Assembly: GCA_026770705.1 (NCBI GenBank)
Contig: JANJGN010000049.1
Coordinates: forward strand, 1,116,001 to 1,180,000
Length of the DNA: 64,000 nucleotides
Reading direction: 5' to 3'
Source: Isurus oxyrinchus
Taxonomy: Eukaryota
The notes below the pieces were generated by a model. That model had not been told where the DNA came from. It was given only the letters and a program-made list of their open reading frames with translations, and did not search any database. Below, one piece after another: positions 499 to 63,311 of this stretch; positions within the stretch are counted from its first letter, which is position 1, and each line of letters starts with the position of its first letter. The translations under genes were made by a program, and so were the position numbers.

Positions 499-568
499 CT
501 GAAACCCCGAGAGCTGCAAGGACAGGGTAGTGAATGGCAAACAGCAGGCCCTTTGGTGATCCATGCAT
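499..568 (-). CDS. Exon 1 of GPR139-like GPCR copy 0 (exon 2 would lie left of the window)
   Basis: Reverse strand reads MHGSPKGLLFAIHYPVLAALGVS+G over 70 nt, followed by a GTGAAG donor at 498. Same length, phase and sequence type as the four plus-strand first exons. Functional status cannot be judged here. Confidence 0.85.
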
Positions 569-760
569 TTCTGACGGAATCGCTCAAAGCGTTGAGTATT
601 CAGTCAAAGTTTGTCAAATTTATATTCATTGGCAGGCTCCAGGGAGATGATGACATGATTTGCATTTTTTTAACATTTATTGCGCTGAAGTAAACAAACA
701 GATTTTTTGCAGCTGCTGTCGGACCCTTGTTTATTCTTTGATGCAATTGAATTTTTTTTC
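569..760 (-). promoter_or_regulatory. Proximal promoter of GPCR copy 0
   Basis: On the minus strand: CAGCTG (710-715), TCATCA-TCTCCCTGGAGCC (about 635-653) and TATAAAT (618-624), at the same offsets from ATG as in the other copies. Confidence 0.7.
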
Positions 761-959
761 AAGGGATCTCACACGGCTCTAATTGAAATTCTCCTGGGCG
801 GCAGCACAATTCTGGTGACATATTTATTTTCTAAAAAGAAGGAAAATCCAAATGGGCGCCTGCAATGGTGAAATTGCGCATTAAGCGGGAGGAACTCGGG
901 TCCTGAACTCCTCAAAGCTGAGGGTGAGAGAGTGAGATAAGGAAATGCTCCTGCACCTG

Positions 960-1310
960 TGATGCCCAGGCCAGTAACCTGTCGATATGGGAGACAAAAC
1001 CCTGATGATAGATGTCAAAATTTGAATTGAATTAATAATACCTGGCATTGAAAGCTACTCAGAGGTATTGGCGGCATTAAAGCCATGACCTATTGCTGTA
1101 AAATCCTATATGGTTCGCTAATCACTTCCCCTGAGGGAACAAAACCTGCCACCCTTAGCCTACATGTGACTCTTGACCCACAACACTGCGGTTGACCCTT
1201 AATGGCCCTCTTATTTTACCAGAAAGGCGAAAGTATCAAGGGCAATTAGGAATGAGCAATAAATTCTGATCTTGCTAGCGATGCCAGCAACCGATGAAAC
1301 GAAAAAGAAA
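960..1310 (+). mobile_element. SINE-like element sharing its 3' tail with the CR1/L2-group LINE
   Basis: Body TGGTTCGCTAATC...CCTACATGTGACTC...GGTTGAC plus the AAGGGCAATTAGG tail. Four more copies occur in the window. Confidence 0.7.
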
Positions 1311-1399
1311 GGAAAGTTGTTTCAGCAGAAGGTATAGCTGACGAGCAGTATCATTTACCTAATGGAAAACGCAGCCAAATTCACCTTCCTGGTCATTAT

Positions 1400-3449: not shown

Positions 3450-6400
3450 CAATAATTAATGTTACATACCAATGGTTGGCGGGATATGTGACACATTGGA
3501 GGCCAAGGTGAAAGCATTCAAGTTGCAGCCCTGTTTCAACCAATTCTACCACCACCACGCACAGCAGGTATGGATACAACATTCTCGTACCACTGATTTG
3601 ATCAAGTAACAACATCATGCCTGAAGACAGAAAGCATTGAAGTCAGAAACAAGGGTTTTTTTCAAGACTGGCATTGCCTGTTATATCTGCTTACGTTGTA
3701 GCTGATCAAAACATCCTTGCTACATTATCCATTGAGGTGCAATGTGATATCCTCCGCCTGCAGGAGACACATACAGGGAGTGAGAACAACTGCCCAAAAA
3801 TAACAGGAACGTTCCTGGTTAATGAAAGACCTCATCGACAATATGGCAGTGCTGTATTTGTTAGAGCTGGTTCAGTTGTAGAAACCACTTCGAAAACAGA
3901 GGAGGACAGCATCGAAATTATAACTGTAGAGCTGAGCAAAGTAGTAGTGACCTCAGTGTACAAGCCACCTGGCACAGATATCAGCTTCTCTAACCCTTTA
4001 CCCAACTGCACAGTAATCCACAGATCATCATTGGAGACTTTAATAGCTACAGTACCCAATGGGAGTACAAGGGGTCTAATAGCGATGGAGAAGCAGTCGA
4101 AGAATGGATGGACGCTAACCAGCTTAGCATGATCCTCGATCCGGAAGTACTAGCCCTTTTCCACTGTGCCCGCTGGAAGTGTAGTTATAACCCAGATCTT
4201 GCCATTGTCAGCAACGACATTGCTGACATCTGCAAGAAGCTTGTCGCAGAGACAAAACCACAGACACAACACCGGCCTATTGGTATCTAGGTAATTGCAG
4301 CAGTGTTATCAACTGTCGTACAATTCAAAAGGTGCTTCAGCTTCAAGAAGGCCGATTGGAACGGCTTCATACGAGCACTTGACTGTAAGGTTAACGCATT
4401 AAACCATTATCTGAGCACTACAACCTGTTTGCAAAAGCTGTTCAGAAAGCAACTAGAAGGAATATCCTCCGAGGTTGTAGAGCACACTACATCTCTGGTC
4501 TCACCAAGGAGAATGCTGAACTCTACTGGGAGTATGCCTCAGTGTTTGAATCTGACCCCTTCTCAGAGGATTCAATACCTACCGGTGAGAGGGTGATATT
4601 AGGTATCTCCCAAGAGCGTCAAACCATCTGGGACACCTTGATAGAGACAACAGTTCTTAGAAAAAAACAGCAAGAAGGCATGGTCTCTCATATGCAAACT
4701 TGGAGGCAATCCCAAGAAAGCTGCTCAACATCCAAATGTGCCTGCAAACCAAGTTGCACACCAATTGCTCCTAAATGGAAAAATCAACAAGAAACAACCA
4801 AAAGCACAACTAGATAGGAAGAAGGACAGCAATGACCCTGGATTCACTGGACCATTCACCAAAATGGAACCATTCACCACGCTGTAAAATGGTATATCTA
4901 CTCTACAACAGGGGAAAGCAATTGCTCTTGACAACATAGCAATGGAGCAGATAAAGCATTTTGTACAGGAAGCAAAGAAATAACTCCTACAATTGTTTAA
5001 CCACTGCCTGGCAACACACAAGCTACCTAATATTTGACAGAAGGCACATGTAATAGCACTATTAAAGCCCGTAAAAGATCCCTCAGATCCTAAGAATTCT
5101 TAGCCAATCTCATTGTTTTGCCACACCAATAAGCTGTTTGAAAGCCTGATACTCAATAGGATAGCGCCAACTGTAGATGAGAAGATGATTCCAGAGCAAG
5201 CAGGTTTCCACCCCGGCAAATCAACGAGTCAACTGCTCAACCTCACACAGCATATCTAAGATGGTTTTGAGCAAGGGCTGGTAACAGGTGCTGTTTTTGT
5301 AGACCTGTCAGCAGCATACGATGCAGTGAACCATAGACGTCTCCTCTGCAAGATCCTAGAGATGACAAAAGATATTCACTTATCAGAGCTGTTAGAACGC
5401 ATGCTTCAGAATCGCTGGTTCGATGTTGAACTAGGTGGGAAGCGCAGCAGATGGCATATTCAGAAGATTGGTCTCCCTCAGGGAAGCGTGCTTGCACCAC
5501 TGCTGTACAACATCTCGAATGACCAACCTATAGACAGTGTAACACACCGTTTCATATATGGTAATGATTTATGTGTCACTGCCCAAAGCACTGTTTTAAG
5601 ACCGTGGAAAAATCGCTTTCTGTGGCCTTGGAGGGACGAACATCCTACTATGAAGAAAACCAACTTTGCGCAAACCCTTCAAAGACGCAGGTTTGTGCAT
5701 TCCACCTCAAAAACCGTGAAGCCAAATGTCAGCTTAAAGTAACCTGATGTGGAGCAATACTGACGGATTTCGAGCACCCAATTTACTTAGGAGTCACCCT
5801 TTACAGGTGCCTCACCTTCAAGCACCACATCGAAAAGACAAAGGCAAAAGTGAGCACACGAAACAACATTCTGAACAAGCTCACTATCACAAAATGGGGA
5901 GCAAGCACGAAAACATTGCGAACCAGTACACTTATTCTTTGCTATTCTACTGCTAAATACACCTACCCTGCATGGGAAATATCTACTCATGCTAAGAAGA
6001 TGGATGCCGTTCTCAATGCAAGCTGCCGACGTATCACAGGTTGTATAAAACCAACAAACACCAACAGCCTATATATCCTGGCCGGTATCCCCCCCACTCA
6101 TATAAGAAGAAAGAAAGAAAGCAAGAAAGAGCGACTTCGTCAAACATCAGAAGAGAGGCACCCTCTACATGGTCATACACCTACAACCAGCAGCCTAAAG
6201 TCAGGGAAGACCTTCATGAACAGTATTGTTCCATTACAATCAATCCGACCTGAAGCCCGCATCGCCTTGTGGAAACATCGACACTCCAGTCTCGAACAAC
6301 CCCCAGCGATGGAAATTGTACCGGATGAAAGCCTTCCCCCAGGGGCTAACTGCAACAGGGCAACCTGGAAGTGCCTTAATAGGCTTAGGACTGGCGTAGG

Positions 6401-6610
6401 TCGTTCAAAGGCAAATGGGGATATACAGCCAGCTCGACAACTTGTGAATGTGGAACTGAACCACAGACTGTGCAACATCTCCTGCAATACCTACCGCTAC
6501 GGGAACCCTGCACTGTTACAGAGCTTGCCGAATTCAACAACAGGCACAAAAATGTGTCCAGATCTAGCTGGGCCATGCACAGACTGTCCATAGACACAAT
6601 AAGTAGAAGT
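3450..6610 (+). mobile_element. Near full-length, decayed Vingi-like (Ingi/I-group) non-LTR retrotransposon with APE endonuclease and RT
   Basis: Broken single ORF from about 3617: CDIL-LQETH, VYKPP, YNPDL (APE); GLPQGSVLAPLLYNI, RFIYGND (RT); RNNILNKL-KWGA, RRITGCIKPT, ERHPLHGH, LNRLRTGVGRSK; ends GACACAATAAGTAGAAG. About 3 kb with no ORF1 or RNase H. The 5' boundary is approximate and the clade is assigned from recalled motifs. Confidence 0.8.
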
Positions 6611-8100: not shown

Positions 8101-8119
8101 TGAAACAGATGGAAATGGG

Positions 8120-9619: not shown

Positions 9620-10080
9620 CTGTATCTGAGACGTAATGTAACCACACTGAACTGAAAGTGTAAACGCTGATTAGAATCATGTTCATCTGGACTTGTCAAC
9701 ACTGAATGTAACCGTGCTGAACTGGAGCAGTCCAAGCTCAATGCAGCCGAGCTGAACTGGAGCAGGACACCATGAATGCGACAGTCCTGAACTGGGCCAC
9801 GGCAGAAGAATATAAACGCGCTGAACTGGGCCGGGACACAATGAATATTACTACTCTGAACTGAAGTGGACTCGTCATTACTGAATGCAAATTTACTGAC
9901 TTGGAGCTGTCCAGGAGAAATATGCCAATGGCGAACTGGACAATTCTACACTGAATATAATTATCCTGAGCTGAAACTCGACCTTTCCGTTTTAAATATA
10001 ACCATACTGAATTAAACATAGTTATGCTAAAGCAGATGCACAATAACTGCTTTCCATATGTGCGGTGATCACACGGACTG
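9620..10080 (+). repeat. Degenerate 35-bp tandem repeat upstream of GPCR copy 1
   Basis: CTGAACTG recurs at about 9647, 9717, 9752, 9787, 9822 and 9856. The unit ACTGAATGTAACCGTGCTGAACTGGAGCAGTCCA matches the 55.6-59.3 kb array. Confidence 0.85.
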
Positions 10081-10329
10081 AAAAAATGATTTGGTTGGGG
10101 TTTTGACTGTGTTAATTTTTCGGACTGGAATATCTCTGATCAGTTCTCTTTTGTGCTGAGACCGCGTCATTCAGCACTAAGGAGCTTGAACCCGCTAATT
10201 CATAATGTCCAACGTTCACTTTAATCATTGCAACTGCTTTTAAAGCTTTTTATTACCGTTCATGGACAAATAAACATGACATCGTTAGAAAGCCTCAGCT
10301 ATTTCAGTATTAAACTGATCTCAAAAAAA

Positions 10330-10507
10330 TCATCCCATCAAAAGACAAGCATACACCTGGTAACAGCTGCAATTATATATTCTTTTCAATCAATATAATT
10401 AATTAAAAATAATAATGCATCTAATTATGTCCCTGGAGCCTGGCATTTAGCATAAATGTGACAGTTTTGCAGAATAGTAGAGAATGCGCTCGAAACTTCT
10501 GTCAGAA
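10330..10507 (+). promoter_or_regulatory. Proximal promoter of GPCR copy 1
   Basis: CAGCTG 10364-10369, TAATTAATTA about 10397, TAATTA 10422-10427 followed by TG-TCCCTGGAGCC, and CATAAAT at 10451. Conserved across paralogs. Confidence 0.75.
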
Positions 10508-10577
10508 ATGCACGGAGCACCAAAAGGTCTGGCTTTTGCCATTTTCTATCCTTTCCTGGCAGCTGTCGGGATTCCAG
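10508..10577 (+). CDS. GPR139/GPR142-like class A GPCR copy 1, exon 1 (N-terminus and first half of TM1)
   Basis: ATG at 10508, MHGAPKGLAFAIFYPFLAAVGIP+G, GTAAAG donor at 10578. The phase-1 junction joins in frame to 12830. Confidence 0.9.
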
Positions 10578-10649
10578 GTAAAGTATTGTTGGCAGTTACT
10601 ACCTTACCGTATCACTGAATAGCTATTTTAATGGTTCCATCCAGCAGTA

Positions 10650-11000
10650 ACTCTTCCTCCATGGTACAATATGCCTCCTCCATTTAAAGTGATAATTTAC
10701 CTGTCTTTTATTTACTTTTTAACTGAGCACTTTCTCTCCTTATAGCGGGCATAATTGGGCTTAATTTAAAGTATAATTTTAACACTTTAAATATTAATGC
10801 TAACTTTCTCAATGTTAACGCTATAATTAATTTCTTTTGATGACACGATTTCTCACCTTTAACGGTGTCCTTTCAAACAATTCACCAACATGTTTTTCTT
10901 CACCCTACCGGTGTAACATTTTCCTTTGTAATATTATACTGTAATTCTTAACCAATACCACTCCGCCCCTTTAATTATACAATTCCTACTATTACCATAG
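10650..11000 (+). repeat. Degenerate 22-bp repeat at the 5' end of the copy 1 intron
   Basis: Consecutive 22-mers CGCTATAATTAATTTCTTTTGA / TGACACGATTTCTCACCTTTAA / CGGTGTCCTTTCAAACAATTCA. Confidence 0.6.
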
Positions 11001-11589: not shown

Positions 11590-11830
11590 TTAAAGACAAA
11601 ATGTGCTGGAAAAAGCTCAGCGGCTGTGGCAGCATGTGTTGAGAGAGAAAGAGGCTTAATATTTCGAGTCCGTATGACTCTTCTTCGGAACAGCAGTCCT
11701 ATTGAACTCGAAGCCCTAGCTCTACTTATCTCTCCACACCTGCTGCCAGGCCGGCTGAGTTTTTCCCAGCATTCCTTTTTTTCCCTTTTAATTCAGATCT
11801 CCAATGTCCGCAGCATTTTGTTTTTTTTTT
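11590..11830. mobile_element. Penelope-derived inverted-repeat (palindromic) element
   Basis: GCTGGAAAAAGCTCAGC..GGCAGCA..GAGAGA..TTTCGAGTCC pairs with AACTCGAAG..TCTCTCCACACCTGCTGCC..GCTGAGTTTTTCCCAGC. Confidence 0.7.
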
Positions 11831-12829: not shown

Positions 12830-13740
12830 CTAATTTGGTGGCCATTGCTATTCTCTCCCGAGGAAGGTGTGGTCTTTCCAGGTGCATCACTCGGTACCTG
12901 GTAGTCATGGCAATGGCGGATCTCCTGGTCATTATTACCGGCGTGATCTTAAACAGGATTGTTGGCATTTATTTCCCAGTGAGTTTCTTGTCCATCACGC
13001 CGTTATGCAGCCTTCGCTCCGTACTGAACTCTGCAACTTTTGGCACTTCTGCCTGGTTAACAGTCGCTTTTACCTTTGATCGATTTGTGGCCATTTGCTG
13101 CCAAAAGCTGAAAATAAAATATTGCACAGAGAAGACGGCGACGTACGTTATATGTGTAGTTTGTACAGTGAATTGTTTCAAATCTTCGTTCTTGTATTTT
13201 ATATATGAGCCCATGTACATAAGTAACAATATTCCCTGGTTCTGCAGCGTAGAAATTGCTTTTTATACATCACCTGCATGGGCTGCATATGACCTGATTC
13301 TTCACATTTTAATGCCTTGTCTCGCATTCATTCTAATCTTACTGCTCAATGCTCAGACCGTCAAACGCATTCTAAAGGCCAGTAGAGCCCGCAGGAGACT
13401 CCGGACCCAGAGAGATGGAGAGAATCAGAGTGACCCAGAAATGGAGAACCGGAGAAGGTCCATCGTCTTACTCTTCTGTATCTCGGGCAGCTTCATCCTG
13501 TTGTGGATTTGGTTTCTAATTAATTGTCTCTATGTCAGAATTGCGAGAGTCACGTATTTCTCTGGTTCAGATTTCAATGGGCTAAATTTTATTCTGGAGG
13601 AAACCGGAATAATGCTTCAGCTTTTGAGTTCCTGCATCAACCCGTTTATTTATGCAGGGACCCAGAGTAAGTTCAGGGAGGATTTAAAGAATGCGCTGAA
13701 ATTACCATGGATTCTCATTGTAAAATTTATTCAACAATAG
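12830..13740 (+). CDS. GPR139/GPR142-like class A GPCR copy 1, exon 2 (intact; spliced product 326 aa)
   Basis: Polypyrimidine tract and CAG acceptor at 12827-12829, then an open frame to TAG. Rhodopsin motifs: ANL (TM1), MAMADLL (TM2), FTFDRFVAIC (DRY-like), ECL2 PWFC, NPFIY (NPxxY) and helix-8 KFRE. Confidence 0.93.
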
Positions 13741-22145: not shown

Positions 22146-22189
22146 CGTTACTGCCTTAATGCCTTAGGATCGAAATTGGGTAGCTTTGA

Positions 22190-22519: not shown

Positions 22520-22701
22520 GAAAAACATTCCATCCAACTGCAATAAAACAAACACCAGTCCCAGCAGCAGATTCACTAATTTGTTTCTTACAAAATTAAT
22601 TAAAGTTATTGCAAACCAGCTAATTATCTCCCTGGTGCCATCAGGTATAAATTTGTCAATTTTTGGTGCAGTGCTGAACGCGCTCAGACCTTCTCATTGA
22701 A
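22520..22701 (+). promoter_or_regulatory. Proximal promoter of GPCR copy 2
   Basis: CAGCAGCAGATTCACTAAT, TTAATTAA, TAATTA-TCTCCCTGGTG (22621-22637) and TATAAAT (22646-22652). Confidence 0.7.
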
Positions 22702-23179
22702 ATGCATGGATTACCAAAAGGCCTGCTCTTTGCCATTTACTGTCCCGCCATTGCAGCTATCGGGGTTCCAGGTAAAGCTAGTAAGTAGCTGCATGAATTA
22801 TTGGTGAGCTATATCAGTGCTCCCATTTTAGCAGTAGCGCATCTCCATGTAACCGATGTTGTTTTCCAATCTAATGGAATATATTTTCTGTTTTCTTTTC
22901 AATTAACTGCCTTAATTTCTCTTCCGCTATCATTCTTCCACTTTAATGGTATTATCTCTCCATTTGACACAATATTTTCTTCAATTTACCTGCATAATTC
23001 CGCAGTATTAATGCTATAATTCCTCCCCTTCAACAGTCTTACTTAATCCTTTTACCAGCGAAGTATATTTACATTACCTGCATATTTTCAACCCTTTAAC
23101 TGATTTTCTCGTGTTAAGCATCATTTTATCACATGAATTGAATAATTTGTCCCAGTTATCACGCCATTTCGAGATGAGT

Positions 23180-23880: not shown

Positions 23881-26199
23881 AGGCTGCGCATTCACCTTCT
23901 TCCCACGGGATGTACTTCATCGCCATCGCCCTCATCGCTTCAACGGGCAATCACTCAACAAATTCCTGAATGATTTCATTGAAAGGAAGCTATTGGGCAG
24001 TGAAATGCTCAAAGATGTATAAGTAAAGTAAAGAATTGTCCATGGATGACTAATTGGCATATGTCTCTCACTCACAGAGCATGGTGTTTCTGCACTCAGT
24101 CTACCCCACTCACTTCTTCATCCGGCTCTCCTCTTCCTCATGCACTATTGCTGTTTGTTCTAAGTTGATGACTGCTGCAGTGGGATTCCCTTCTGTTCCT
24201 AGCACGCGGCAATGTCTCGGAATTTCTCAGCATTAATTGAGGACCCGTAAGTGGCTGTACCCTCTCGGAAAATATATAATATTTTTATTCCAAATATTCG
24301 TCCTTGGCTGCACATGGCTGTTATACGGACTGTGGAGTGCAGGACGGGGGAAGTGTTGCATCGTGGAAGATTATTTCTCTAAAGGAGACCACGTCAACTG
24401 CCAATGGTTCTATTAGTTGAGATCGACACCCAAAATTATCAGGTGATTATCAGGTGAAGAGTTCCAACATACTCTGCATCCTGCATAAAATGTCCACCGC
24501 ATAGTTGGAAGTGCTAATGTTCCAAACGCTTCATTCTGTTTGAGAGTATGTTTTACACTGTTCATTACAGACATTTTAAACAGTGAATAAGTTCACAGAA
24601 TTTCATTTGTAGGACCAACTTCTGATCCTCAGTGAGACATAATCCGTGTTCTTGTTAGATTTCACACTTGTTGGATGCTTTATTTGTCTACTTCAATAGT
24701 TTCTATAGCTCTTCGATGATGGGTTTTCATTTTTGTGTGTTCCATTATTCTGTGTTATAGACAAGTTTTGATTTCCTTTTCATTCTCTGTTAAGTTTCAT
24801 GAGAATATATTTTATTCGCAAACCATTGGCTCAATTTCTTTTGAAACAGAATCATTATTTCAAACCCAAAATAACCGCCCATAGAATGAAAGATAATTTC
24901 CAACTGAGTATCAAGTCTCGAAGCTATACGTTTCACACACAACTGTAAAAAGAATGATTTTGTTTGAAGACAAGCAAGGCATTTTCCTGTTCTCAACCTA
25001 ACTCACACACATTGTCTCTGTCTCTCTCTCTCTCCCTTTCTCTATTGCAGCTAATTTGGCAGTGATCATGATCCTGCCTCGAAGAAGATGCGGCCTCTCT
25101 GGATGTATCACTTATGACGTGGTGTCCGTGGTGATGGATCTCCTGGTCATAGTTACAGCTGTAATATTGAACCGAATTGCTGGGATTTATTTCCCATTCA
25201 GCTTCCTCTCTGTCACACCAATGTGCAGTCTCCTTTCTGCACTAACTTTTGAAGCTATAGACAGTTCTGCCTGCTTAACAGTTGCTTTCACCTTTGATCG
25301 ATTTGTGGTCATTTGTTGCAGGGAGCTGACACGAAAATATTGCACCGAGAGGATGGAAGCATGAGTAAAAGGAATCGTATCCGCACTGAGCTGTGTAAAA
25401 AATGCTTTCTTGTATTTTATATAACAACCGAGATACACAATTAAAAATATACCCTGGTTCTGCACTGTAAAAATAATATTTTACAAGTCGCCAGCATGCG
25501 CCACATATGACTGGATTTGTTTCATTGTAACCCTTTTTCTCCCATTCATTCTGATCTTATTCCTAATGCTCTGACTGCCATGTACATTCTAGCGGCCAAT
25601 AGTGCCCGCAGGAGACTCTGTATCCAGAGTATTGGACAGAATCAGAGTGACCCAGAGATGGAGAAGCGGACAAAGTCCATACTTTTACTTTTTGCCATCT
25701 CGGGAAGTTTCATTCTTTTATATTTGCTCTTTTTTGCAACTATCCTCTATGTCCGAATTGCGAAAGTAATCTATTTCTCAGGATTCACTTCTACTCAAGG
25801 AACATTTACTCTTGAGGAAAAAAAGATTTATGCTTTAGTTATTGTCCTCCGGTATCAACCCGTTTATTTATTCAGGGACCCAGAGTAAATTCAGGGCCGA
25901 GTTAAAGAATGGGCTGAAATACCCACTGAACATTTTGATTAAATTATTTAAAATTGGATAGTAGGTAAATTCTGCTGAACTGTACGTTATTTCCCAATAC
26001 TTCATCTCCTACTCTGTGCCACGTAAGACCACGCATCCAAGATCCTCTCGGTTTCAAATCCATTCCCAATGTGTCAATATAAAAATGAATAAGGAAAACA
26101 GCATCACTGCAGGATTAAGTGAGAAAAATCATCACAATTAGTTTCCTGTTCTCTTACCGGTACTTACTCAGGCCTGGTGCATCCCAGCAGCCTCGATGG

Positions 26200-40834: not shown

Positions 40835-41043
40835 GAAAGAAAACATTCCATTTCATTAAAACAAAAACAACAGGTTAGCAGCAGCTGCACTAATCTGTTT
40901 GCTACAGTAACTAAATTGAAGTTGAATTTAAATTAATTAAGCAAGATTTCAAAACAACTAATTAGCTCTCTAGAGCCTGGCAAGAGGACTAATAGTGACC
41001 ATACTCAGTGGATTGCAGAGCACGCTCAGAGCTTCTGAAACAA
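40835..41043 (+). promoter_or_regulatory. Proximal promoter of GPCR copy 3 (partly decayed)
   Basis: CAGCTG 40882-40887, TTAATTAA, TAATTA 40959-40964 followed by GCTCTCTAGAGCC. The TATA position is mutated. Confidence 0.65.
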
Positions 41044-44000
41044 ATGCATGCAGGACCAAAAGGTCTGGTGTTTACCATTTATTGTCTCTTCCTTGCAGTT
41101 ACCAGCGTTCCAAGTGAGACATTGAGGTTACTTAGCAGTTGTGTTAAGTTATTGTTTAGCTGCATAAATTCTCATAATTATCCGTAGCGCTTCTTTATGT
41201 CACATACATGCCTTCTCCCGTTTCATGGAGTATAATGTTCCTGTCCAGGACTATAATGTGCTTTGTTACAGGGCACAATTTACCCTCTTTTACAGCATGA
41301 CTCATTCACGTTAACAGCATTAATTCACCACTTTAAAATTATGATAACTGAATTAATGACATAATTTCACGGTTTATTGTTATAATTTCTCCACTTTTAA
41401 CATTACCATTTCACTGATTTACCAGCGTAATGTCTTCATATTATCTATATTGCGGACAGCCTTTAGCTTCCATTGTCTTGTTATGAAAGGTAGAATTTTA
41501 TCTCTTCTATTATATTATTTCTTCCATCTATGTCCAACATCTGACGATGAAGATAATTTTTGATTGTGTTATTGACCCTGTTACTGTTGTTAAAAAAATA
41601 GCGCTATCACGGTGTAAAGGGAATTCCATTGTGCTATTGTCAGTACAATTTTGGCTGAATTAACACAAAGTTGTTGTGGTGTAAATTTTGTTCTATTGTG
41701 GCATCGACCCCTTCTCTGATGGTGATCTCTCACACAATGCGGATGAAATTTGATTCTGTTATTGGCTCTGTCACTTGGAGTGAATTCTCACATTGTTAAA
41801 ACTAAGCAGTTTTGTTTTGTCTGGTTGACTCTGACAGCAACGGAAAAATTCCGACCCATGAATCATTTCTTGAAATATTTAAACCATCGAAGGATCTCCA
41901 CTGAATTTAATGGATTGATATAATGAAGGAACTTTATTAGCCACTGAAATGTTGAGACGTATAACAATGCTGTAGATGTCCTTTGCCAGTGAGCTCAGTG
42001 CTTCTGTTCTAAGCCTCTAACACCCCCTGCTTCAGCCAGGCACTCCTCTCCGAAATTCTCTGCTGCTGATAGTTCTAGATTCCTTATTGCTGAGCAGGGG
42101 ATTTTCTTTTGTGCCGAACATCCGACGTTGTCTCTGACTGTTCACATCATCGTGATTTTCTCCACATTAATTGAAGCCCCAGAAGTGGCCTCATCCCTCA
42201 CATGAGCCACATAACACCCTTCTTTTAAATATCGACAACACGATAAATGTCATAATTTATCCCAATACCACAGTGTAACGCCCAGTAAATGGCACACTTA
42301 GGAGCATCTTTAGCCAAATGTCACCTCCTCATTGCCAGTTCCACTGATTCGGATCGACGCAGAAGACCTGAGTTTATGATGAGGCAAAGATCTCAGGTTT
42401 GCCACTGCCTCCAATCCAAAGTGTCCACTGCAAATTCGGAGATATGTGACTGTTTAGTGGCATCATTTTGTTGTGGATGCTTTTGAGCAAGTTGCCGGCC
42501 GGATTTTCCAACACGAAGCACATTTTTATTGCCTTATTCTTTCAGGTTCTGTGGGCCTTGCTGACTGGACAGCATTTATTTCCCATCCCTAATTGCCCTA
42601 GAGAAGTTGGGGTGAATCGTCTTATTGAACCACTGCAGCTCATGTAGTTATAGGTACTCCCACAGCACTACTAGGAAGGGATTTACAGGATTCTGCCCCA
42701 AAGAGATTGAGGGAATTGAGATATAGCTACAGGTCAGTTTAGTGTGTTGCTTGGAGGGGAACTTACAGGTGGTGCTCCAGTGTGTCAACTTCCCTTTTCC
42801 ACCGAGCTAGTAGAGGTCCCAGGATTGGAATATTCTGTTGAACATTGCAACTTGTATACAGTACACACTTCTGTTCCTGCGTTTAACGGTGGTGGCAAGA
42901 GTGAATGTTGAAGGTGGAGGATGGGGTGACAATTAAGTAGGCTGTGTATTTTTCCTGTATGATGTCAACTTTCTTGAGTGTTGTTGGAGCCAAAGTCATC
43001 CAGTCAAACTGGAAACATCCATTCAGCCGCCTGAACTGGGCATTTGATGGTGGACATACTTTGTGGAGACATGTGGGTGAGTTATTCACACCTGTCCTGT
43101 TCTTCATCTAAAATATTTAAATTGCTGGTTCAGTTCGGTCCCTGGTCAATTTCTCATCCAGGATGCTCACAAAACATTGAAAGTAGCCTCTGTGGAATAA
43201 TTGGAGGTATAAACCGTCTTCTTGATATTTTCTGCACTTACACTTGCTCGTTGTGTTATTTAACGGCATCAATGCTTATTATATATAGATTTGCAGATTG
43301 AAACAATTATTATGTACTCGATGTTCTGGTGTCATCTCTAATAAGTTTTAAACATTTTGTTGTCCTCTATTGGCCTGATTCTCATATTTTGCATTATAAT
43401 GCCATTGACTTGCCCTAGTTCCTTGATCTGGATGAGTACTTTTTATTCCAGTAAACAGTTGTTCCCCTCCAACTGAGGGTCGCACTACAAAGTTTTAAAG
43501 TTCACTCAGGATTATTTGAAACATATGAATATGTTACCCGTCGTTCTGCTCTCTCTCTCTCTTTCTCTCTGTCTCTCTGTATTGCAGCAAACTCGGCAGT
43601 GATTGTGATCCTCTGTCGAAGAAGGTGCAGCCACTCCAAATGTATCAATTATTACCTGGTGTCCATGGCAGTGACAGAAATCTTGGTCATGGTGACCGCG
43701 GTAATATTAAACAGAATTGTTGGAAATTATTTCCCATCTAGTTTCCTGTCTATCACACCAATTTGCAGTTTTCGTGCTGCCTTAAATACGGCAGCAATTG
43801 ACTGTTCTGCTTGGTTAACAGTTGCTTTCACCTTTGATTGTTTTGTCGCCATTTCTTGCCAGAAGCTAAAAATAAGATATTGCACCAAATAGATGACAAC
43901 ACGGGTTATTGTAATCGTTTTGGTACTGAATTGCATAAAAAATATCTTCATATATTTTGAATTTGAACCGAGGTGTATTATTGACAATATACCCTGGTTC

Positions 44001-44485
44001 TGTATCATTATACTTTGCTGGCATGGATATCATTTGACTGGCTTCGTTCCATATTAACCCCTTTTCTCCCAATCATTCTGATTTTACTGCTCAATGCTCT
44101 AAGCGTAAAACACATTCGAGCAGCCAATCGAGCCCGCAGGAATCTCCAGACCTAGCGCAATGGAGAGAATCAGAGTGATCCAGAGGTGGAGAAGCGGAGA
44201 AAGTCCATTGTTTTAATCTTTGGCATCTCGGGAACTTTTATCCTCTCATATTTGATATTTCTTGTAAACATTATTTATGTCCGAAGAGCCAATGTTACCT
44301 ATACCTCAGATTCTGATTTCAGTAATGTCGCATTCATTCTCCAGCAATTTGGATATATTCTTCAGCTATTGAGTTCCTGCATCAACCTATTTATTTATGC
44401 TGGGACCCAGAGTAAAATCAGAGCCGAGTTAAAGAATGGGGTGAAATATCCACTGAACCAAATTATTAAAACATTTAACATTTGA
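41044..44485 (+). pseudogene. GPR139-like GPCR copy 3, pseudogene (exon 1 41044-41113, exon 2 43588-44485)
   Basis: Exon 1 MHAGPKGLVFTIYCLFLAVTSVP with GT donor. DRF is changed to DCF; stops at 43890 and 44153; deletion near 44010. Confidence 0.92.
42535..43150 (-). mobile_element. CR1/L2-group LINE 3' end in the copy 3 intron
   Basis: Inverted tail CAGCATTTATTTCCCATCCCTAATTGCCCT and the peptide WMTLAPTTLKKVDIIQEK-LIVTPSSTFNIHSCHHR. Confidence 0.75.
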
Positions 44486-54162: not shown

Positions 54163-55554
54163 TCTTTTGCAGTTATTAATCATAATGCGAGGGATACAGA
54201 GGAAAGTGCCCCCCTGAACCTGACAAGGGATTGGGATTGTGCGTTGAGTGTTTTGGTTGGTTTTGTGAGGGCAGGGGAAACCCAGCGTATTTTCTGGAGG
54301 GTTAAGGGATGGTGGAAAATAGAACAGGCAGTCTATTTGGCTCTCAAAACCATGACAGTGTGGATATCCTCAGCTGAGGGAAATGAATTCCCTATTTGAG
54401 CATTGGTATGAAAGGTGAATACTCAGAGGAGTTGTTTTGCAGATTCAGAAAAACCGGAGAATGCAATGCACAATTTATAGGAAGCTGTGTGCGAGGAAAT
54501 GATGCTGTTGGAGTCAGTGCGCTGATGGTGAATTTGGATAGCCTATCTCCAGGAATTGAAAAGCATATTCAAGGAAATGAACGGAAGAAACTGAGGGGGA
54601 CAATATGAAGGTGTGGGAATGTTGGAAATTTGAAATAAGGTTAACTGCTATCCCGAACAGTGTTTGAGAGCAGGAGATTGAACTCAGAAATGTGCCGGAG
54701 AAGGAGATGAGGGTGGGGGCCTGAGGAAGAATAAAACAAGCAAAATTTTATGCATTGTGGAGTAAAGCAACCGATATAGTTAGGATCCATTCCTGTATCT
54801 ATAGCAATATCTTGTTTTCACAGAGGTGACTGGAGTGAAAGGAGAAGTGTTTTTATTGAGTGCGACAGCAGATTCAAGTAGGGAAGGGCTGTGTTCTCGT
54901 GATGGATCGAAATTAGTTGGAAGTTATCTCAAGAAATGAACAAATATCTGTCAGTCTACCCTGGTAGGGGATGGGGGAAAAAGAAATGGTTATGGACAGG
55001 AAACTGGGAACTTTCAATGTGGCGGTGGCATTAGGCATGTCACAGGTTGGGGTGGAAAGAGACTGAATGGGGCGTTTCCAAAATGCATGGAGGCACGCTG
55101 ACCAGACACGGTCCACACATAGTGGGACAGTAAAGAATAAGGCCTTTGCAAAAGTAATATATTCGTGTTCATACAACCAAAAGCCCAATTACTGAAGACC
55201 TGTTGAAAAGGTCCCGTGCACACTAAACATAAAAGGTGTGTAAAGAGGGCATTGTGTACCTGAATTTAAAATACAACATTTCGGAAACATACCGCGTGTC
55301 TGACAGCGTCTGTGGCAAAAGAAACTGAATCGTTCTGAGATTCTACAGCATTTTATGTAACAATTTCTGACCAAATATAACTTTGGGAGTTGCACAGCTA
55401 CATTAAGTCAGTAACCGTACTGAACTGAAATGTCCAATCTGAAGGCAATCCTGCTGAATAGGATTTTGTCGATTTACAGTTGTGCTGTATAGAACTGAAC
55501 TTGTGTAAGCAGAAAGAAAATGCCTTGTGTAACGCAGATGAACAAAGATGTGTC

Positions 55555-58500
55555 TCCATGATGAACTGAAACAGTCCACACTGAATGTCCCAAAGCTGAA
55601 CTGAACCAGTCCACACTGAATATCCCCATGCCGAACTGAACCAGTCCACACTGATTGTTATCATGCTGAACTGAAACAGACCACACTGAATGTCACCGTG
55701 CTGAACTGAACCAGTCGACACTGAATGTTACCATGCTGAACTGAACCAGCCCTCACTGAATGTTACCATGCTGAACTGAACCAGACCACACTGAATATCA
55801 CTATGCTGAACTGAACCGGACCACACTGAATGTCACTGTGCTGAACTGAACCAGTCCACACAGAATGTTACCATGCTGAACTGAACCAGTCCACACTGAA
55901 TGTCAACATGCTGAAATGAAACAATCCATACTGAATGTTGCCATGTTGAACGGAAAAAATTCCACACTGAAAGCCTCCATGCTGAACTGAACCAGCCCAC
56001 ACTGAATGTCACCATGTTGAATTGAACCAGCCCACACTGACTGTCACCGTGCTGAACTGAACCAGTCCACACTGAATATCACCATGCTGAACTGAACCAG
56101 TCCACACTGAATGTTACCATGCTGAACTGAACCAGTCCACACTGAATGTAACCAGGCTGAGCTGTAACAATCCGCACTGAATGTCACTTTGTTGAATGGA
56201 ACCAGTCCACACTGAATGTAAACATGCTGAAATTAACTAGTCCACACTGAATGTCACTAGGATGAGCTGTACCAGTCCAGACTGAATGTCACCACGCTGA
56301 ACTGTACCAGTCCTCACTGAAATTCGCCATGCTGAATTCAACTAGTCAATACTGAATGTCATCATGCTGAACTGAACCGGTACACACTGAATGTCACTAT
56401 GCTGAACTGTAACAGTCCACACTGAATATTACCATGCTGAACAGAACTAGTCCACCCTGAATGTCACTTTGCTGAATTGAACCAGTCCACACTGAATGTC
56501 ACCATGCTGAACTAAACCAGTCCACACTGAATGTCAACTTGCTGAACTGAAGCAGTCCACGCTGAATGTCACCATTCTGAAATGAAACAGTGCACGCTGA
56601 AAGTCACCATGCTGAACTGAACCAGTCCACACTGGATGTCACCATGCTGAACTGAACCAGCCCACAATGAATATCACCATGCTGAACTGAACCAGTCCAC
56701 ACTGAATATCACAATAATGAACTGTAGCAGTCCACACTGAATGTCACCATTCTGACCTGAAACAGTCCACACTCAATGTCACCATGCCGAACTGAACCAG
56801 TCCACAATGAATGTCACCATGCTGAATTGAACCAGTCCACACTGAATGTCACCATGCTGATCTGAAACAGTCCACACTGAATGTCGCCATGTTGAACTGA
56901 ACCAGTCCACACTGAATATCACCATGCTGATCTGTACCCATCCACATTGAATGTCACCATGCTGATCTGTACCAGTCCAGACTGAATGTCACCATGCTGA
57001 ACTGAACCTGCCCACACTGAAGGACACCATGCTGAACCAAAATAGCCCACAATGAATGTCACCATGCTGACTTGAACCGGTCCACACTGAATGCCTCTAT
57101 GCTGAACTGAATCAATCCACACTGAATGTTAACAGGCTGAATTGAACCAATCCACAATGAATGTCATCATACTGAACTGAACCAGTCCGCATTGAATATC
57201 ACCATACTGAACTGTAGCAGTCCACACTGAATGTCACCATGTTGAATTGAACCAGTCCACCCTGAATGTCATCATTCTGAACCGAACCAGTCCACAATGA
57301 ATGTCAGCATGCTGTACTGAACTAATCCACATTGAATGTCACAATGCTGAACTGAAGCAGTCCATACTGCATGTTAAAATGCTGAACTGAACCAGTCCAC
57401 ACTGAATGTCACCATGCCGAACTGAACCAGTCCACACTGAATGTCACCATGCTGAACTGAACCATTACACACTGAATGTCATCGTGCTGAACTGAAACAG
57501 TCCACCCTGAATGTCACCATGCTGAACTGAACCAGTACACACTGAATGTCACCATGCTGAACTGTACCAGTCCACACTGAATGTCACCATGCTGAACTGA
57601 ACCTGCCCACACTGAAGGACACCATGCTGAACCAAAACAGCCCACAATGAATGTCACCATGCTGACCTGAACCAGTCCACACTGAATGCCTCTATGCTGA
57701 ACTGAATCAATCCACACTGAATGTTAACAGGCTGAATTGAATCAATCCACAATGAATGTCATCATACTGAACTGAACCAGTCCGCATTGAATATCACCAT
57801 AATGAACTGTAGCTGTCCACACTGAATGTCACCATTCTGACCTGAAACAGTCCACACTCAATGTCACCATGCCGAACTGAAACAGTCCGCAATGAATGTC
57901 ACCATGCTGAATTTAACCAGTCCACACTGAATGTCACCATGCTGAACTGAAACAGTCCACACTGAATGTCGCCATGCTGAACTGAACCAGTCCACACTGA
58001 ATATCACCATGCTGATCTGTACCCGTCCACATTGAATGTCACCATGCTGAACTGTACCAGTCCAGACTGAATGTCACCATGTTGAACTGAACCAGCCCAC
58101 ACTGAAGGGCACCATGCTGAACCAAAACAGCCCACAATGAATGTCACCATGCTGACCTGAACCAGTCCACACTGAATGCCTCTATGCTAAACTGAATCAA
58201 TCCACACTGAAAGTTAACAGGCTGAATTCAACCAATCCACAATGAATGTCATCATACTGAACTGAACCAGTTCGCATTGAATATCACCATACTGAACTGT
58301 AGCAGTCCACACTGAATGTCACCATGTTGAATTGAACCAGTCCACCCTGAATGTCATCATTCTGAACCGAACCAGTCCACAATGAATGTCAGCATGCTGT
58401 ACTGAACTAATCCACATTGAATGTCACAATGCTGAACTGAAGCAGTCCATACTGCATGTTAAAATGCTGAACTGAACCAGTCCACACTGAATGTCACCAT

Positions 58501-59275
58501 GCCGAACTGAACCAGTCCACACTGAATGTCACCATGCTGAACTGAACCATTACACACTGAATGTCATCGTGCTGAACTGAAACAGTCCACCCTGAATGTC
58601 ACCATGCTGAACTGAACCAGTACACACTGAATGTCACCATGCTGAACTGAAGCAGTCCACACTGAATGTCACCAAACTGAACTGAACCAGTACACACTGA
58701 ATATCACCATGCTGATCTGTACCCGTCCACATTGAATGTCGCCATGCTGAACTGTACCAGTCCACACTGAATGTCACCATGCTGATCTGAGCGAGCCCAC
58801 ACTGAAGGACACCATGCTGAACCAAAACAGCCCACAATGAATGTCACCATGCTGACCTGAACCAGTCCACACTGAATGCCTCCATGTTGAACTGAATCAA
58901 TCCACACTGAATGTTAACAGGCTGAATTGAACCAATCCACGATGAATGTCACCATACTGAGGTGAACCAGTCCGCATTGAATGTCACCATGCTGAACTGA
59001 ACCAGTCCACACTGAATGTCACCATTTTGAACTGAAGCAGTCCACACTGAATGTCACCATTCTGAACCGAATCAGTCCACAATGAATGGCAACATGCTGA
59101 ACTGAACTAATCCACACTGAATGTCACAATGCTGAACTGAAACAGTCCACACTGCATGTTAAAATGCTGAACTGAACCAGTCCACAATGAATGTCTCTAT
59201 GTTGAAATGAACCAACCCACACTGAACGTCTCTGTGTTGAACTGACCCAATCCATACTGAATGACACCATTTTGA
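55555..59275 (+). repeat. 35-bp tandem minisatellite, about 106 units, consensus ACTGAATGTCACCATGCTGAACTGAACCAGTCCAC
   Basis: Unit starts at 56071, 57016, 57611, 58101, 58801 and 59221 are exact multiples of 35 apart. Degenerate flanks extend to about 55410 and 59950. Confidence 0.97.
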
Positions 59276-60054
59276 AAGTAACTTCACTTTTCCAAGCTCG
59301 AAATATCCTGACCTGGCCCTGTCCATTATAAATATAAAAAACTGTCATGCTCGAGACTGCGCCAACTTTAAGTTGAGGAACTGGTCTTGCCGACTCTGAA
59401 ATTAATTTTTATAAACTGGATCTCTCTTCGCTGGATATCATCGCGCTGAGCTGCACCTAAAGCAGGATCTATTAAACATAAGATTAGTGAACACACTGAA
59501 CTCATCCATGCTGAATACGACCTTACCCAGAAATCGATGAATAAATCTGATCCACACTGGCTGGGAGCTCATTACTCTGACCCTGTACACACAAAATGTA
59601 ATTAACCCGAACGAGAGCAGTAATACACTGACATTACGGACATTGTCCAGGACATGTCGATATCAAATGTACCTTTGGAAAATTAGGCATGTCCACCCTT
59701 AACCTTACTGTTCCATATTGGAAATGCTCTGGTGAACTGATCCTGTCCACAATAAACATAATGGAAAAGACCTGAGCAATCCACGCTTAATGCAAGCGTG
59801 AGGAATTGGGCCAATGGACAGCGAAGGCAACCGAATGTAACTGGGTGTATCCTCAATTAATACGCATTCAGTTGTGTGAAAGCGTGTGAATAGTCTCAAA
59901 GGCAGTTGACACCAGGTTGCATCTGATTCGTGACAACACGGGCTGAGCAATAGTCAGGTGTGAGAACTTCTCTACGTTTCCTTAGTAACATTTGCCATTA
60001 TCAGCGTGGTCAGTATAGTCACTGGTTCACTTTAGATTAGTTTCCAGCCTCATT

Positions 60055-60244
60055 AAAGAACATTCCATGCAATTAACTCCTGAACACAAGCTGAGCAGCA
60101 GCTGCACTAATCTGTTTTTTTTAACCTAAATGTAATTAATGTAAAGTTTCAGGCCATCTAATTATCTCCCTGGAGCCTGGTATCGTGTATAAATATGACA
60201 GTTTGACAACGATTTGCAGAACACGCTCAGAGAGTCAGATAGAA
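60055..60244 (+). promoter_or_regulatory. Proximal promoter of GPCR copy 4
   Basis: CAGCTG 60099-60104, TAATTAA about 60133, TAATTA-TCTCCCTGGAG 60159-60175 and TATAAAT 60188-60194. Confidence 0.75.
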
Positions 60245-63200
60245 ATGCACGGAGCACCGACTGGTCTGGTGTTAGCCATTTACTAACCCGTCCTTGCAGC
60301 TATCGGGGTTCCAGGTAAAGTATTGTAGTTATTTTGTAACTTCAATTGTCAATGGTAGGCAGCATTAATTAACCCATATTGCCTGTCGCACATCCCCACG
60401 ATATGTTTTGTCCCATTTAATGAGATATACTTCCCCCTTCATCCGTGCACTTTTTTCCTTTAAATGGTATATATATATTTTTTTTAAGCCTGAACTACGT
60501 TTCCTTTGCTATTCTAACCATATCAGTTCGCCATTTTAAGGTTCCTTTTTGCCTAATTTAAGAATGCATTTTCTTCAATCTATTGATTTATTTTCTATTA
60601 ATGTGATAGTTTCTCCACTATCCCTTTTATTCCCCATCTTACCTTTATAATTCCCTCCCTGTAATGGTGCACTATCCCCCAATCGCTTTAATTATATATT
60701 TATATAATTTATATTATTTACTGTTAGCCATCTCACGATGTAAACATACTTCAATTGTGCTATCGGCACAATTGCTGTGGATTAATTATTTGCACCGTAT
60801 TGTTAAACATTAAAAGCAATTCCATTGTTGGCGCTGATACACAGGGAAAATAAGAGCGAGTGCAACGAAAGTTTACCTGACTGATTCCTGGCATGGCAGT
60901 GCTGACATATGAGGAGAGATTGAGTCGGTTAGGATTATATTTGTTAGGGCGCAGAAGAATGAGGGGGGGATATCATAGAAACCTAGAAAATTCTAACAGG
61001 AATAGACAGGGTAGATGCAGGGAGGATGGTCCCGATGGTGGGGGAGTCCAGAACCAGGGATCACAGTCTGAGGATATGGAGCAGACCACTTGGGGCTGAG
61101 ATGAGGAGAAATTTCTGCACATAGAGGGAAGTGAGCCTCTGGAATTCGCTACCACAGAAAGTAGTTGGGTCCAAAACATTGTACGTTTTTGAGAAGAATT
61201 TTGATATTCGCCCTCTTGGGGCTAAAGGGGTGAAAAGGTACGGGGAGAAAGCTTGAACAGGTTATTGAGTTGGATGATCAGCCATGATCATAATGAATGG
61301 CGGAGCAGGCTCGAGGGGCCGAATGGCCTACTCCTGCTCCTATTTTCCATGTTTCTATGTTTATATAATCATACCATTATCATGGAGTTCCTATGGGTGA
61401 TTAATCAAAATGTTGTTACAATGTGAATGAAATTTGATTTTCTAACTGGCTCTATAGAATAGCACGTTGTTATCAGGGTGTAATTGTACTTCCACTGTGT
61501 TGCCACAAGGTTCTTGTGAGTTTTATGACAGTGTAAAAATAGTTCAGTTGTGTTCTTGACCGTGTTCCCGTTGTTTATTGAAAAAAGAAATGTTAAAGTG
61601 CAAATGCATTTCTATTGATTTTTTGCCATTGCCATTAAAGGAATAATTCCCAATAATGGTTGAATGATCGATAATCGATTGAATATTTCCCAGCTGAACT
61701 TAGTAGCTCAAGTTACTAAGGAACATGATTAGGCACCGATTTTTGACAGATATTTTAGCAGTGTAAAAGTAACGTTTCGATGAATGATTGGTATTTGCCT
61801 CAAACTCAACGTTCTGTTTCTCAGTCTCAAACAAATTGAGCAAGTTGACTGCGGACATTTCCAAGACTCAGTATTTTTTTACAGTCATTCGTTGACTGGG
61901 GTCACTTTTGATGCTCAACCTGACATAATGTGTTTTCTGGCTAGTTTCCTCAGGTATTGTTCAATAGTTTTTTTTTTCAGCTGCATCGCTATTCTGGATA
62001 GAATTTGTCGATGTAGCAGATATTTTATTTTACTTTCTATCTATTTGCTGCTCCCATGTTTTTGGATGCCTTTGTGCTCTCTGCTGCATGTCATTATATT
62101 ATTCTTATGTCATTGACCTACCTTAGTTTCGGGATTATTATTTCAACCATGGAAACAATTGTCCCTAGCTTTTGGGATACTTTTGAACACATAATCACAT
62201 CTTAAATGTATTATTTTCACCAGAATCCTTTAAAGCATTATTTTTGAGGGATTGGCGGTTTGTTGGGGTGTGGTGGGGAAAAGAGTTGTGGGGCTGCAGG
62301 TGGAGGAAATTCAGAAAGTTTCTTGATCTTGATCTTGATCTCTCCCAGATGCATTTTCTCTCTATCTCTCTTGCTTACACAAGCTATCTTACAATATCTT
62401 TATCTGTATTACAGCTAACTTGGAAGTGATTGTGATCTTGTCTCGAAGAAGGTGTGGTCTCTCTAGATGTATCATTTGTTACCTGGTATTCATGGCGGTG
62501 ACGGATCTCCTAGTCATGATCACTGCTCTGATATTAAGCTGGATTGCTGGTATTTATTTCCCATACAGTTCCTTGTCCATCACGCCTGCTGCAGTCTCCG
62601 AACTTCCTTAATCTATGCAGCCATTGACAGTTCCGCCTGGTTAACGGTTGTTTTCACTTTTGACCGATTTGTGGCAATTTGTTGCCAGAAGCTGAAAATA
62701 AGATACTGTACCGAGAGGACAGCAGCAGTGGTTATAGGAATAGTGTCCACACTGAGCTGCGTAAAAAGCACGTTCATGTATTTTGCAAACGAACCTATGT
62801 ACTTAATTAACAATATACCTTGGTTCTGCAGGTTAAAGTCAGTATACTATACGTCACCTGCATGGGCTGCATATGACTGGGTTCGTTCCATTGTAACCCC
62901 GTGTCTTCCATTCATTCTGATTTTACTGCTCAATGCTCTAACCATTCGACATATTGTCTTGGCCAATAGAGACTCCGCAGGAGACTCCGGGCCCAGAGCA
63001 ATGAAGTCGACCAGAGTGACCTGGAGATGGAAAAGCGGAAGAAGTCCATGGTTTTACTCTTTGCCATCTCGGGCAGCTTCATCCTGTCATGTTTCTTATT
63101 TTTTATAATGGTGTTTTATGTCCGAATTGCCAATGTCCCTTACTTCTCAGGTTTGGATTTCAATGATTCTGCATTTGTTCTAGAGGAAAGTGGCTATCTG

Positions 63201-63311
63201 CTTCAGATCATGAGTTCCTGCATCAACCCATTTATTTATGCTGGGACTCAGAGAAAATTCAGGGCTGAGATAAAGAATGTGCTCAGCCTAATGTTTAAAT
63301 TATCTAAATAA
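60245..63311 (+). pseudogene. GPR139-like GPCR copy 4, pseudogene (exon 1 60245-60314, exon 2 62415-63311)
   Basis: Exon 1 MHGAPTGLVLAIY*PVLAAIGVP has TAA at 60284. Exon 2 retains DRFVAICC and NPFIY but has frameshifts near 62590 and 62970. Confidence 0.92.
60860..61362 (+). mobile_element. CR1 LINE 3' end in the copy 4 intron
   Basis: LTYEERLSRLGLY-LGRRRMRG and the tail GGGCCGAATGGCCTACTCCTGCTCCTATTTTCCATGTTTCTATG. Confidence 0.9.

Follow-up and report, generated by a model that had tools for sequence, protein, structure and literature searches.

A tandem array of two-exon, GPR139-related receptor genes in Isurus oxyrinchus: anatomy, ancestry and a possible chemosensory use

Introduction

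A 64-kb stretch of the genome of the shark Isurus oxyrinchus (GenBank assembly GCA_026770705.1, contig JANJGN010000049.1, positions 1,116,001 to 1,180,000; hereafter the window, free of runs of N and numbered from its first letter) carries five copies of a two-exon gene for a class-A G-protein-coupled receptor (GPCR). It is best read as one section of a tandem array, whose receptor family appears to descend from a GPR139-related ancestor and to have expanded in sharks and rays through birth and death, with genes repeatedly duplicating and decaying. During this expansion, the arginine that anchors the ligands of GPR139 seems to have been replaced by many different residues, and the outcome would be a ligand-diversified repertoire of receptors signalling through one common partner. 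Such a repertoire would most likely serve chemosensation, either in olfactory cells or in sensory cells of other epithelia, with ligands probably no longer restricted to amino acids. Confidence differs among the parts of this explanation: it is very high for the anatomy and evolutionary history of the array and tentative for chemosensory use, which falls somewhat short of an even chance, while the explanation taken as a whole is evenly poised between right and wrong.

The chemoreceptor repertoire of elasmobranchs is described as dominated by a single family (V2R), with a nose largely devoid of odorant receptor (OR) expression (PMC6368271, PMC10116579), and a vertebrate-wide census of chemoreceptors covers six families only (PMC10869828). 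A class-A family of more than 100 divergent lineages confined to elasmobranchs would be an obvious candidate to fill this gap. No description of an elasmobranch family labelled GPR139 was found in the searched literature, whose scope stopped short of subscription journals and supplements; a chemosensory review mentions GPR139 in its reference list only, and neither ‘GPCR’ nor ‘orphan’ occurs in the text of a paper on the olfactory transcriptome of the catshark (PMC10116579). New here are the gene models of the window, the history of positions 6x51 and 7x50 across lineages, and a test of variability in the ligand pocket.

Anatomy of the receptor array

The window holds a single long GPCR-like open reading frame (ORF), at 12766–13740 on the forward strand and of 324 residues. 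Used as a tblastn query against the window, it returns four copies, all on the forward strand: itself at 12766–13737 (100%; locus A), 25023–25952 (E 1.9e-66; locus B), 43578–44470 in two pieces and different frames (E 1e-50 and 2e-49; locus C) and 62402–63323 in three pieces and three frames (E 8e-19, 5e-53 and 9e-36; locus D). No further copy of this exon appears in the 64 kb even at E ≤ 50. The start of the ORF was rejected as the start of the protein, the first 21 residues being the translation of an intronic pyrimidine tract. Since this long tract ends in AG at 12829, the exon begins at 12830, in phase 1. Full-length relatives in the databases open with a conserved 23-residue N-terminus (MHGSPKGL.FAIYYP.LAA.G.P) that ends exactly at this junction, and a six-frame scan for it located five first exons, at 10508, 22702, 41044 and 60245 on the forward strand and at 568 on the reverse strand, with no other match at the chosen score in any of the six frames of the window. 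Each forward first exon lies 2.1–2.5 kb upstream of one of the second exons and is followed by a GT donor. The count of four second exons and five first exons gives five loci, of which the fifth (locus E) would have its second exon beyond the left edge; the tblastn search of exon 2 was accordingly rejected as a complete count of loci, as it misses locus E, which only the scan for the short first exon sees.

The gene plan thus consists of a 70-base exon 1, which encodes the N-terminus and half of the first transmembrane helix (TM1), a phase-1 intron of 2.1–2.5 kb, and an exon 2 that encodes the remainder of the receptor. Locus A, the intact copy, has its exon 1 at 10508..10577 (+), reading MHGAPKGLAFAIFYPFLAAVGIP plus one base before the donor CAG/GTAAAG, and its exon 2 at 12830..13740 (+), with 302 codons after the split codon and a TAG stop at 13738; the 70 and 908 coding bases make up 326 codons, the length of the spliced protein proposed in an earlier note on this DNA. 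Protein searches made after correction of the ORF used exon 2 alone, from 12832, exon 1 being only located.

The three other complete copies are pseudogenes. In locus B, exon 1 (22702..22771, +) is open, and exon 2 (25051..25955, +; 3′ end approximate) is interrupted by stops at 25362 (TGA) and 25422 (TAA), by a frameshifted and garbled stretch over TM5–TM6, and by further stops in the entry frame at 25572, 25590, 25767 and 25836. Exon 1 of locus C (41044..41113, +) is open but divergent, with the donor CAA/GTGAGA, and its exon 2 (43588..44479, +; 3′ end approximate) is broken by TAG stops (43890, 44153) and by a single frameshift that falls between 44003 and 44009. Locus D carries an in-frame TAA already in exon 1 (60245..60314, +; stop at 60284) and frameshifts near 62557–62587 and 62964–62970 in exon 2 (62415..63311, +), which closes with a TAA at 63309–63311. 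Because the lesions differ, the three copies were disabled independently. Of locus E, only exon 1 is in the window (499..568, −; scan score 105), with 23 open codons plus one base and the donor CAG/GTGAAG. The earlier note had announced five two-exon GPCR loci, with one intact, three disabled by different lesions and one cut by the edge, between 499 and 63311; the gene models agree in every respect, with 499 being the end of exon 1 of locus E and 63311 the end of the stop codon of locus D.

All four second exons fall, by blastx, in the same subfamily as their best database matches. Their DNA is only 70–74% identical (Kimura two-parameter distance, K2P, 0.32–0.38), so the array is old rather than the product of a recent burst.

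Size and distribution of the family

Two protein searches delimit the family. In a word-indexed collection of 5.8 billion proteins, 2337 of 3748 candidates match at E ≤ 1e-5; among the best 120 of the 2337, all 119 named rows are elasmobranch and, by hand count, 84 of the 120 come from Heterodontus francisci. The product of copy A itself is not in the collection, since identity peaks at 75%. HMMER, run exhaustively over 1.84 billion representatives clustered at 50% identity, yields 496 clusters at E ≤ 1e-3, of which 155 pass E ≤ 1e-10 and 108 pass E ≤ 1e-30. Look-up of 22 representatives with E ≤ 4.4e-41 gave the name of a shark or batoid for 21 (the batoids include Leucoraja, Mobula, Rhinoraja, Hypanus and Narcine) and no chimaera. 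Weaker matches come as single clusters from salamanders (34% identity), the coelacanth (31%) and one teleost (33%), all labelled GPR139, and beyond these bony-vertebrate clusters follow sequences at about 27% identity. Matches in the ESM Atlas were confined to ‘GPR139’ clusters of the family itself and to generic 7tm_1 clusters. Judged from these collections, the family is very large and elasmobranch-specific in its expansion; the small family that would have spoken against the earlier proposal was not what the searches returned, as they gave 2337 proteins and, at the strictest threshold, 108 clusters. The family is also clustered in the genome and rich in pseudogenes.

As the earlier note had anticipated, most automated names read ‘probable G-protein coupled receptor 139’. 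The label is a loose one, because members of the family are also called ‘GPR15-like’, ‘neuropeptides capa receptor-like’, ‘sex peptide receptor-like’ and ‘FMRFamide receptor-like’. A few annotations are odder still: P0114 is a ‘zinc finger protein 595-like’ with zinc-finger Pfam domains, a ‘RING-type domain-containing protein’ occurs in the P0168 cluster, and some models run to 400–600 residues. Such fusions and odd names are probably errors of gene modelling in dense arrays.

The relation between the elasmobranch genes and the bony-vertebrate clusters was examined in a maximum-likelihood tree, built with a quick method and with support measured by the Shimodaira–Hasegawa-like approximate likelihood ratio test (SH-aLRT) alone. 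Its 46 rows comprise exon 2 of the window, 35 rows labelled elasmobranch (27 under a named organism, 7 without a look-up), a further 6 from bony vertebrates and 4 distant matches. The salamander lineage joins the elasmobranch rows (SH-aLRT 98), and the lineage of coelacanth and teleost lies outside (97 for its own branch).

Relationship to GPR139 and loss of its ligand-anchoring arginine

Membership of class A is firmly indicated. The product of locus A matches Pfam 7tm_1 with 75.3 bits (cut-off 30.5; E 7e-21) and shows hallmarks of the class, with DRF at the end of TM3, NPFIY in TM7, and the cysteines Cys59 and Cys138. This cysteine pair, which links TM3 and the second extracellular loop (ECL2), is present in all of the 94 close paralogs analysed (the best 120 matches minus the 26 outside 295–345 residues), whereas GPR139 lacks it at the aligned positions. 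The CWxP motif of TM6 is absent from copy A, which reads LWIWF there and has no Pro 6x50; only 7 of the 94 paralogs have Pro 6x50, and 16 have Trp 6x48.

Among solved structures, GPR139 is the top match for the ORF (E 2.2e-10, the next at 1.7e-5) and for exon 2 alone (E 2.5e-7). A profile of 21 family sequences gives it 98.3 bits versus 80.7 for neurotensin receptor 1, a margin of 17.6, which is a distant similarity, as is that of the single protein. The same receptor comes first for the bony-vertebrate relatives, with 70 bits versus 44 for the next match in the coelacanth (P0238; margin 26) and 53 versus 40 in the salamander (P0229; margin 13). For a control, the distant match P0264, neuromedin-U receptor 2 is first and GPR139 only 12th. 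Solved structures do not include GPR142. Rescaled by arithmetic to the library of representatives, human GPR139 would stand near E 2.5e-3, behind about 496 clusters. Kinship with GPR139 is thus real but remote, since GPR139 is the top solved match for the family and its bony relatives, yet ranks 12th for the distant control. Nothing assigns the genes to the ORs or TAARs by sequence: among the solved-structure matches, TAAR13e reached E 6.1e-5 with the ORF and no OR was listed, and neither a TAAR nor an OR is among the best 60 of the profile search.

Two positions give this kinship its history. In the published account of the GPR139 pocket, GPR139 and GPR142 are the sole class-A receptors with Arg 6x51, activation requires a positive charge at that position, docking places the arginine in contact with both the side chain and the carboxylate of L-Trp and L-Phe, and position 7x50 is Phe in GPR139, as opposed to Pro in 94% of class A (PMC8807744). 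TM6 reads LWAPR in GPR139 and LWIWF in copy A, of which the 6x51 residue is Phe; arginine occupies the position in 3 of the 94 close paralogs. In a wider alignment, it is present in all three coelacanth and teleost rows and in a distant row, P0269 (LWFPR), and is replaced by lysine in all three salamander rows. The 35 elasmobranch rows show 11 residue types (F8 N7 Y5 L3 A2 Q2 T2 I2 S2 R1 K1), of which only two rows are basic. Position 7x50 is Met in the salamander, coelacanth and teleost rows, and is not Pro in any of the 28 more distant elasmobranch representatives (Thr in 26, Ile in 1, Met in 1). Pro 7x50 is confined to the subfamily of the window, with copy A, all seven of its rows in the wider alignment and 87 of the 94 close paralogs. 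At the residues corresponding to the GPR139 contacts E105, E108, F109 and I112, copy A has S, N, S and F.

We read these patterns as a sign that the whole group shares ancestry with GPR139 and that a basic residue at 6x51 may be ancestral and was released in elasmobranchs. They further suggest that one large shark subfamily reverted to the canonical NPxxY within a lineage that had lost the proline. Most of the shark family shares with GPR139 the rare non-Pro 7x50 and a short N-terminus, but differs from GPR139 and GPR142 by the absence of Arg 6x51 and, for the most part, of Pro 6x50 and Trp 6x48; the subfamily of the window differs from GPR139 by its canonical NPxxY as well, and copy numbers are in the hundreds versus one copy of GPR139 in mammals. 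The shark genes appear to be neither GPR139 nor GPR142. The affinity to GPR139 put forward in the earlier note therefore holds as kinship (closest solved receptor, Arg 6x51 in coelacanth and teleost, non-Pro 7x50 in most of the family) and seems to fail as identity. Its idea of an expanded amino-acid-sensor lineage keeps the GPR139-type descent but loses much of its ligand side: aromatic amino acids are not a safe prediction, because Arg 6x51, kept in 3 of 94, has been lost. Even if the receptors are not sensory, two changes deserve description: the GPR139-type arginine gave way in steps, with Arg still present in coelacanth and teleost, Lys in its place in salamander and no fixed residue in sharks, and one subfamily regained Pro 7x50. 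Together they form a natural experiment on an amino-acid-sensor scaffold freed for new ligands.

Variation across paralogs

Diversity among the 94 close paralogs is unevenly distributed. At the 17 ligand-contact positions named for GPR139 (PMC8807744), the mean entropy is 1.28 bits versus 0.70 at the 152 other numbered TM positions (a numbering that leaves out TM4), and the outer halves of the helices have 1.09 bits versus 0.53 for the inner halves. The 40 most variable sites include 3x29, 3x32, 3x36 and 6x51. At the other extreme, conservation reaches 90% or more in 135 of the 302 columns of exon 2, among them a DPEMExRRKS stretch of the third intracellular loop.

A promoter shared by the five loci

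All five loci possess their own compact promoter, some 55–150 bases before the ATG, composed of an E-box, two homeodomain-type TAATTA sites, an Olf/Ebf-like (O/E-like; EBF) site adjoining the second TAATTA, and a TATA box. The core runs in the order CAGCAGCTGCA, then TAATTAATTA, then CTAATTAT abutting CTCCCTGGAGCCTGGCA, then the TATA box about 56 bases before the ATG. When the 400 bases upstream of the five first exons are aligned, mean pairwise identity is 0.69 in the promoter core, close to the 0.70–0.74 of exon 2, and drops to 0.39 (unalignable) farther upstream. Distances to the ATG are nearly fixed, at −86, −81, −85 and −86 for the homeodomain site, −78, −73, −77, −78 and −77 for the O/E-like site, and −56, −57 and −56 for the TATA box. 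A 23-base block spanning the homeodomain and O/E-like sites has three matches at up to 3 mismatches versus none in shuffled sequence; copies B and E exceed this number of mismatches.

The promoter of locus D (60099..60194, +) is the best preserved, with CAGCTG at 60099, TAATTA at 60133 and 60159, TCCCTGG at 60167 and TATAAAT at 60188. That of locus A (10364..10457, +) has CAGCTG at 10364, TAATTA at 10396 and 10422, TCCCTGG at 10430 and CATAAAT at about 10451, and its 23-base block has a single mismatch. Locus B (22568..22652, +) shows TAATTA at 22597 and 22621, TCCCTGG at 22629 and TATAAAT at 22646. The promoter of locus C (40882..40995, +) is partly degraded, with TCTCTAG in place of TCCCTGG and CTAATA in place of the TATA box. 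In locus E (569..720, −), CAGCTG is found at −147, TCCCTGG at −77 and TATAAAT at −56 (window position 624), all counted from the ATG, and the homeodomain site is degraded to TCATCAT.

In mouse OR enhancers, Lhx2 and Ebf sites stand directly side by side, and the Ebf half tolerates degeneracy (PMC5608512). The likeness of the shark promoter to these enhancers lies in the adjacency of homeodomain and O/E-like sites, and in that alone.

Search of sequencing runs

Six runs of unknown kind contain about 0.27 of the words of the locus A gene. Contigs of these runs are 95–99% alike to the region 10300–14300, one of them covers the intron (12057–12568), and none of those compared joins exon 1 to exon 2, a result with no bearing on expression either way. 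With this degree of likeness, an intron covered and no contig skipping it, their source seems to be DNA, either a relative's or that of paralogs. Of the runs guessed to be RNA, X7 matches the region only by a 30-base repeat and X10 not at all. Contigs of X1 and X3 cover 12057–12568 (intron) and 12748–13875 (exon 2) with 2–5% differences, and could be the orthologue of a close relative or a near paralog.

Chemosensory use and its alternatives

Chemosensory function is a plausible, good and testable hypothesis. The variable pocket, the conserved inner face, and the promoter with adjoining homeodomain and O/E-like sites fit it but do not show it. The resemblance to vertebrate ORs and TAARs extends to tandem clusters, many pseudogenes, large lineage-specific copy numbers and short N- and C-termini, in addition to a variable pocket with a conserved inner face; the shark family differs by belonging to neither in sequence and by an intron within TM1. 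A parallel is offered by class-A expansions in invertebrates, for example in Lophotrochozoa (PMC11886862), where a rhodopsin-type subfamily expanded in one lineage was likewise proposed to be chemosensory on genomic grounds; both the subfamily and the phylum are different. In its most far-reaching form, the explanation would make these genes a seventh vertebrate chemoreceptor family and the principal set of odorant receptors so far missing from sharks and rays: a GPR139-type amino-acid sensor recruited after loss of its carboxylate-anchoring arginine and expressed as one gene per sensory neuron by an OR-like logic of adjacent Lhx2-type and Ebf-type sites, independently of the ORs of bony vertebrates. 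So extended, it is speculative and rather unlikely.

Several points weigh against the preferred explanation. A variable outer half with a conserved inner half is common in many GPCR families and is not specific to chemoreceptors. The excess of entropy at contact positions has p-values (Mann–Whitney 0.001, permutation 0.0004) that overstate independence, because the 94 paralogs are interrelated and come mostly from one subfamily and one species, and the TM numbering behind it was self-assigned from anchor residues and one HMMER alignment. In the tree, the branch that has all elasmobranch rows on one side is weak (SH-aLRT 70), and the rows are family members and four distant matches, without true GPR139 or GPR142. 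As to the promoter, the O/E-like site fits only part of the palindromic EBF consensus, TAATTA is bound by many homeodomain proteins, TAATTA and CAGCTG each by many neuronal factors, and the sole intact copy, A, has CATAAAT where the pseudogenes B and D and the edge-cut E have TATAAAT. Three of the four complete copies in the window are dead, and copy A itself departs from the family at 10 of the 135 conserved columns, compared with a median of 5 and with 8 of the 94 members at 10 or more; its departures include Trp to Leu at 5x43 and Pro to Ala at 5x53, and by this measure it is intact but somewhat atypical. Finally, no run on record as RNA contains the locus A gene in the search of sequencing runs.

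The strongest competitor, unlikely in our estimate but to be taken seriously, is that the diversified receptors are used inside the body, for example in brain neurons or in blood or immune cells, where they would sense endogenous peptides or metabolites. The closest known relative, GPR139, is a neuromodulatory receptor of the brain (PMC8807744); next in the ranking of solved structures come peptide receptors (for neurotensin, prolactin-releasing peptide, ghrelin and chemokines); and a gene of chemoreceptor type can be specific to immune cells (PMC13113109). It would be unusual, however, for receptors of endogenous ligands to form hundreds of paralogs, with a hypervariable pocket and frequent pseudogenes. 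We know of no expanded ligand family that would match them, which also counts against internal use, and the promoter, with its E-box, homeodomain and O/E-like sites, looks more like that of a neuronal or sensory cell than of a leukocyte.

It is improbable that the family is mostly the product of neutral amplification, in which a gene residing in repeat-rich, satellite-bearing DNA would have been copied by segmental duplication and left to decay without any collective function. The dead copies of the window, the upper-tail position of copy A for departures from conserved positions, and spacers with a reverse-transcriptase remnant and a 3.7-kb satellite of 35-base units speak for such a process. 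Yet the copies are old (by the K2P values given above), and conservation of 90% or more still holds over the 94 paralogs in 135 of 302 exon-2 columns. Several species have annotated full-length proteins of the family, hundreds in all, the variation gathers in the pocket rather than being evenly spread, and the promoter has been kept as well as the coding sequence. That the genes are true paralogs of GPR139 or GPR142 still sensing aromatic amino acids is highly improbable: the automated names, the first rank of GPR139 among solved structures and the importance of amino acids as major odorants of fishes speak for it, but Arg 6x51 is rare among the paralogs and is Phe in copy A, four contact residues have changed to S, N, S and F, and human GPR139 would stand behind about 496 clusters in the representative library.

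Surroundings of the array

No other gene was recognisable among nine ORFs scanned in the spacers between the loci, in which the one domain match, to RVT_1, is below threshold. Three consecutive forward-strand ORFs at 3674–6593 resemble a decayed retroelement, and it is the ORF at 5326–5742 that gives the RVT_1 match (25.4 bits, cut-off 29.6). At 29947–30514, opposite-strand ORFs of 155 and 187 residues overlap tandem repeats with units of 39, 48 and 6–24 bases of CATCAT- and TCTTCT-type, and represent low-complexity DNA rather than a gene. A satellite with a 35-base unit, in 106 copies with 81% matches, occupies 55551–59270 (about 3.7 kb), about 1 kb upstream of the promoter of locus D, and a 2.8-copy remnant of a similar 35-base unit lies at 9697–9795, upstream of locus A.

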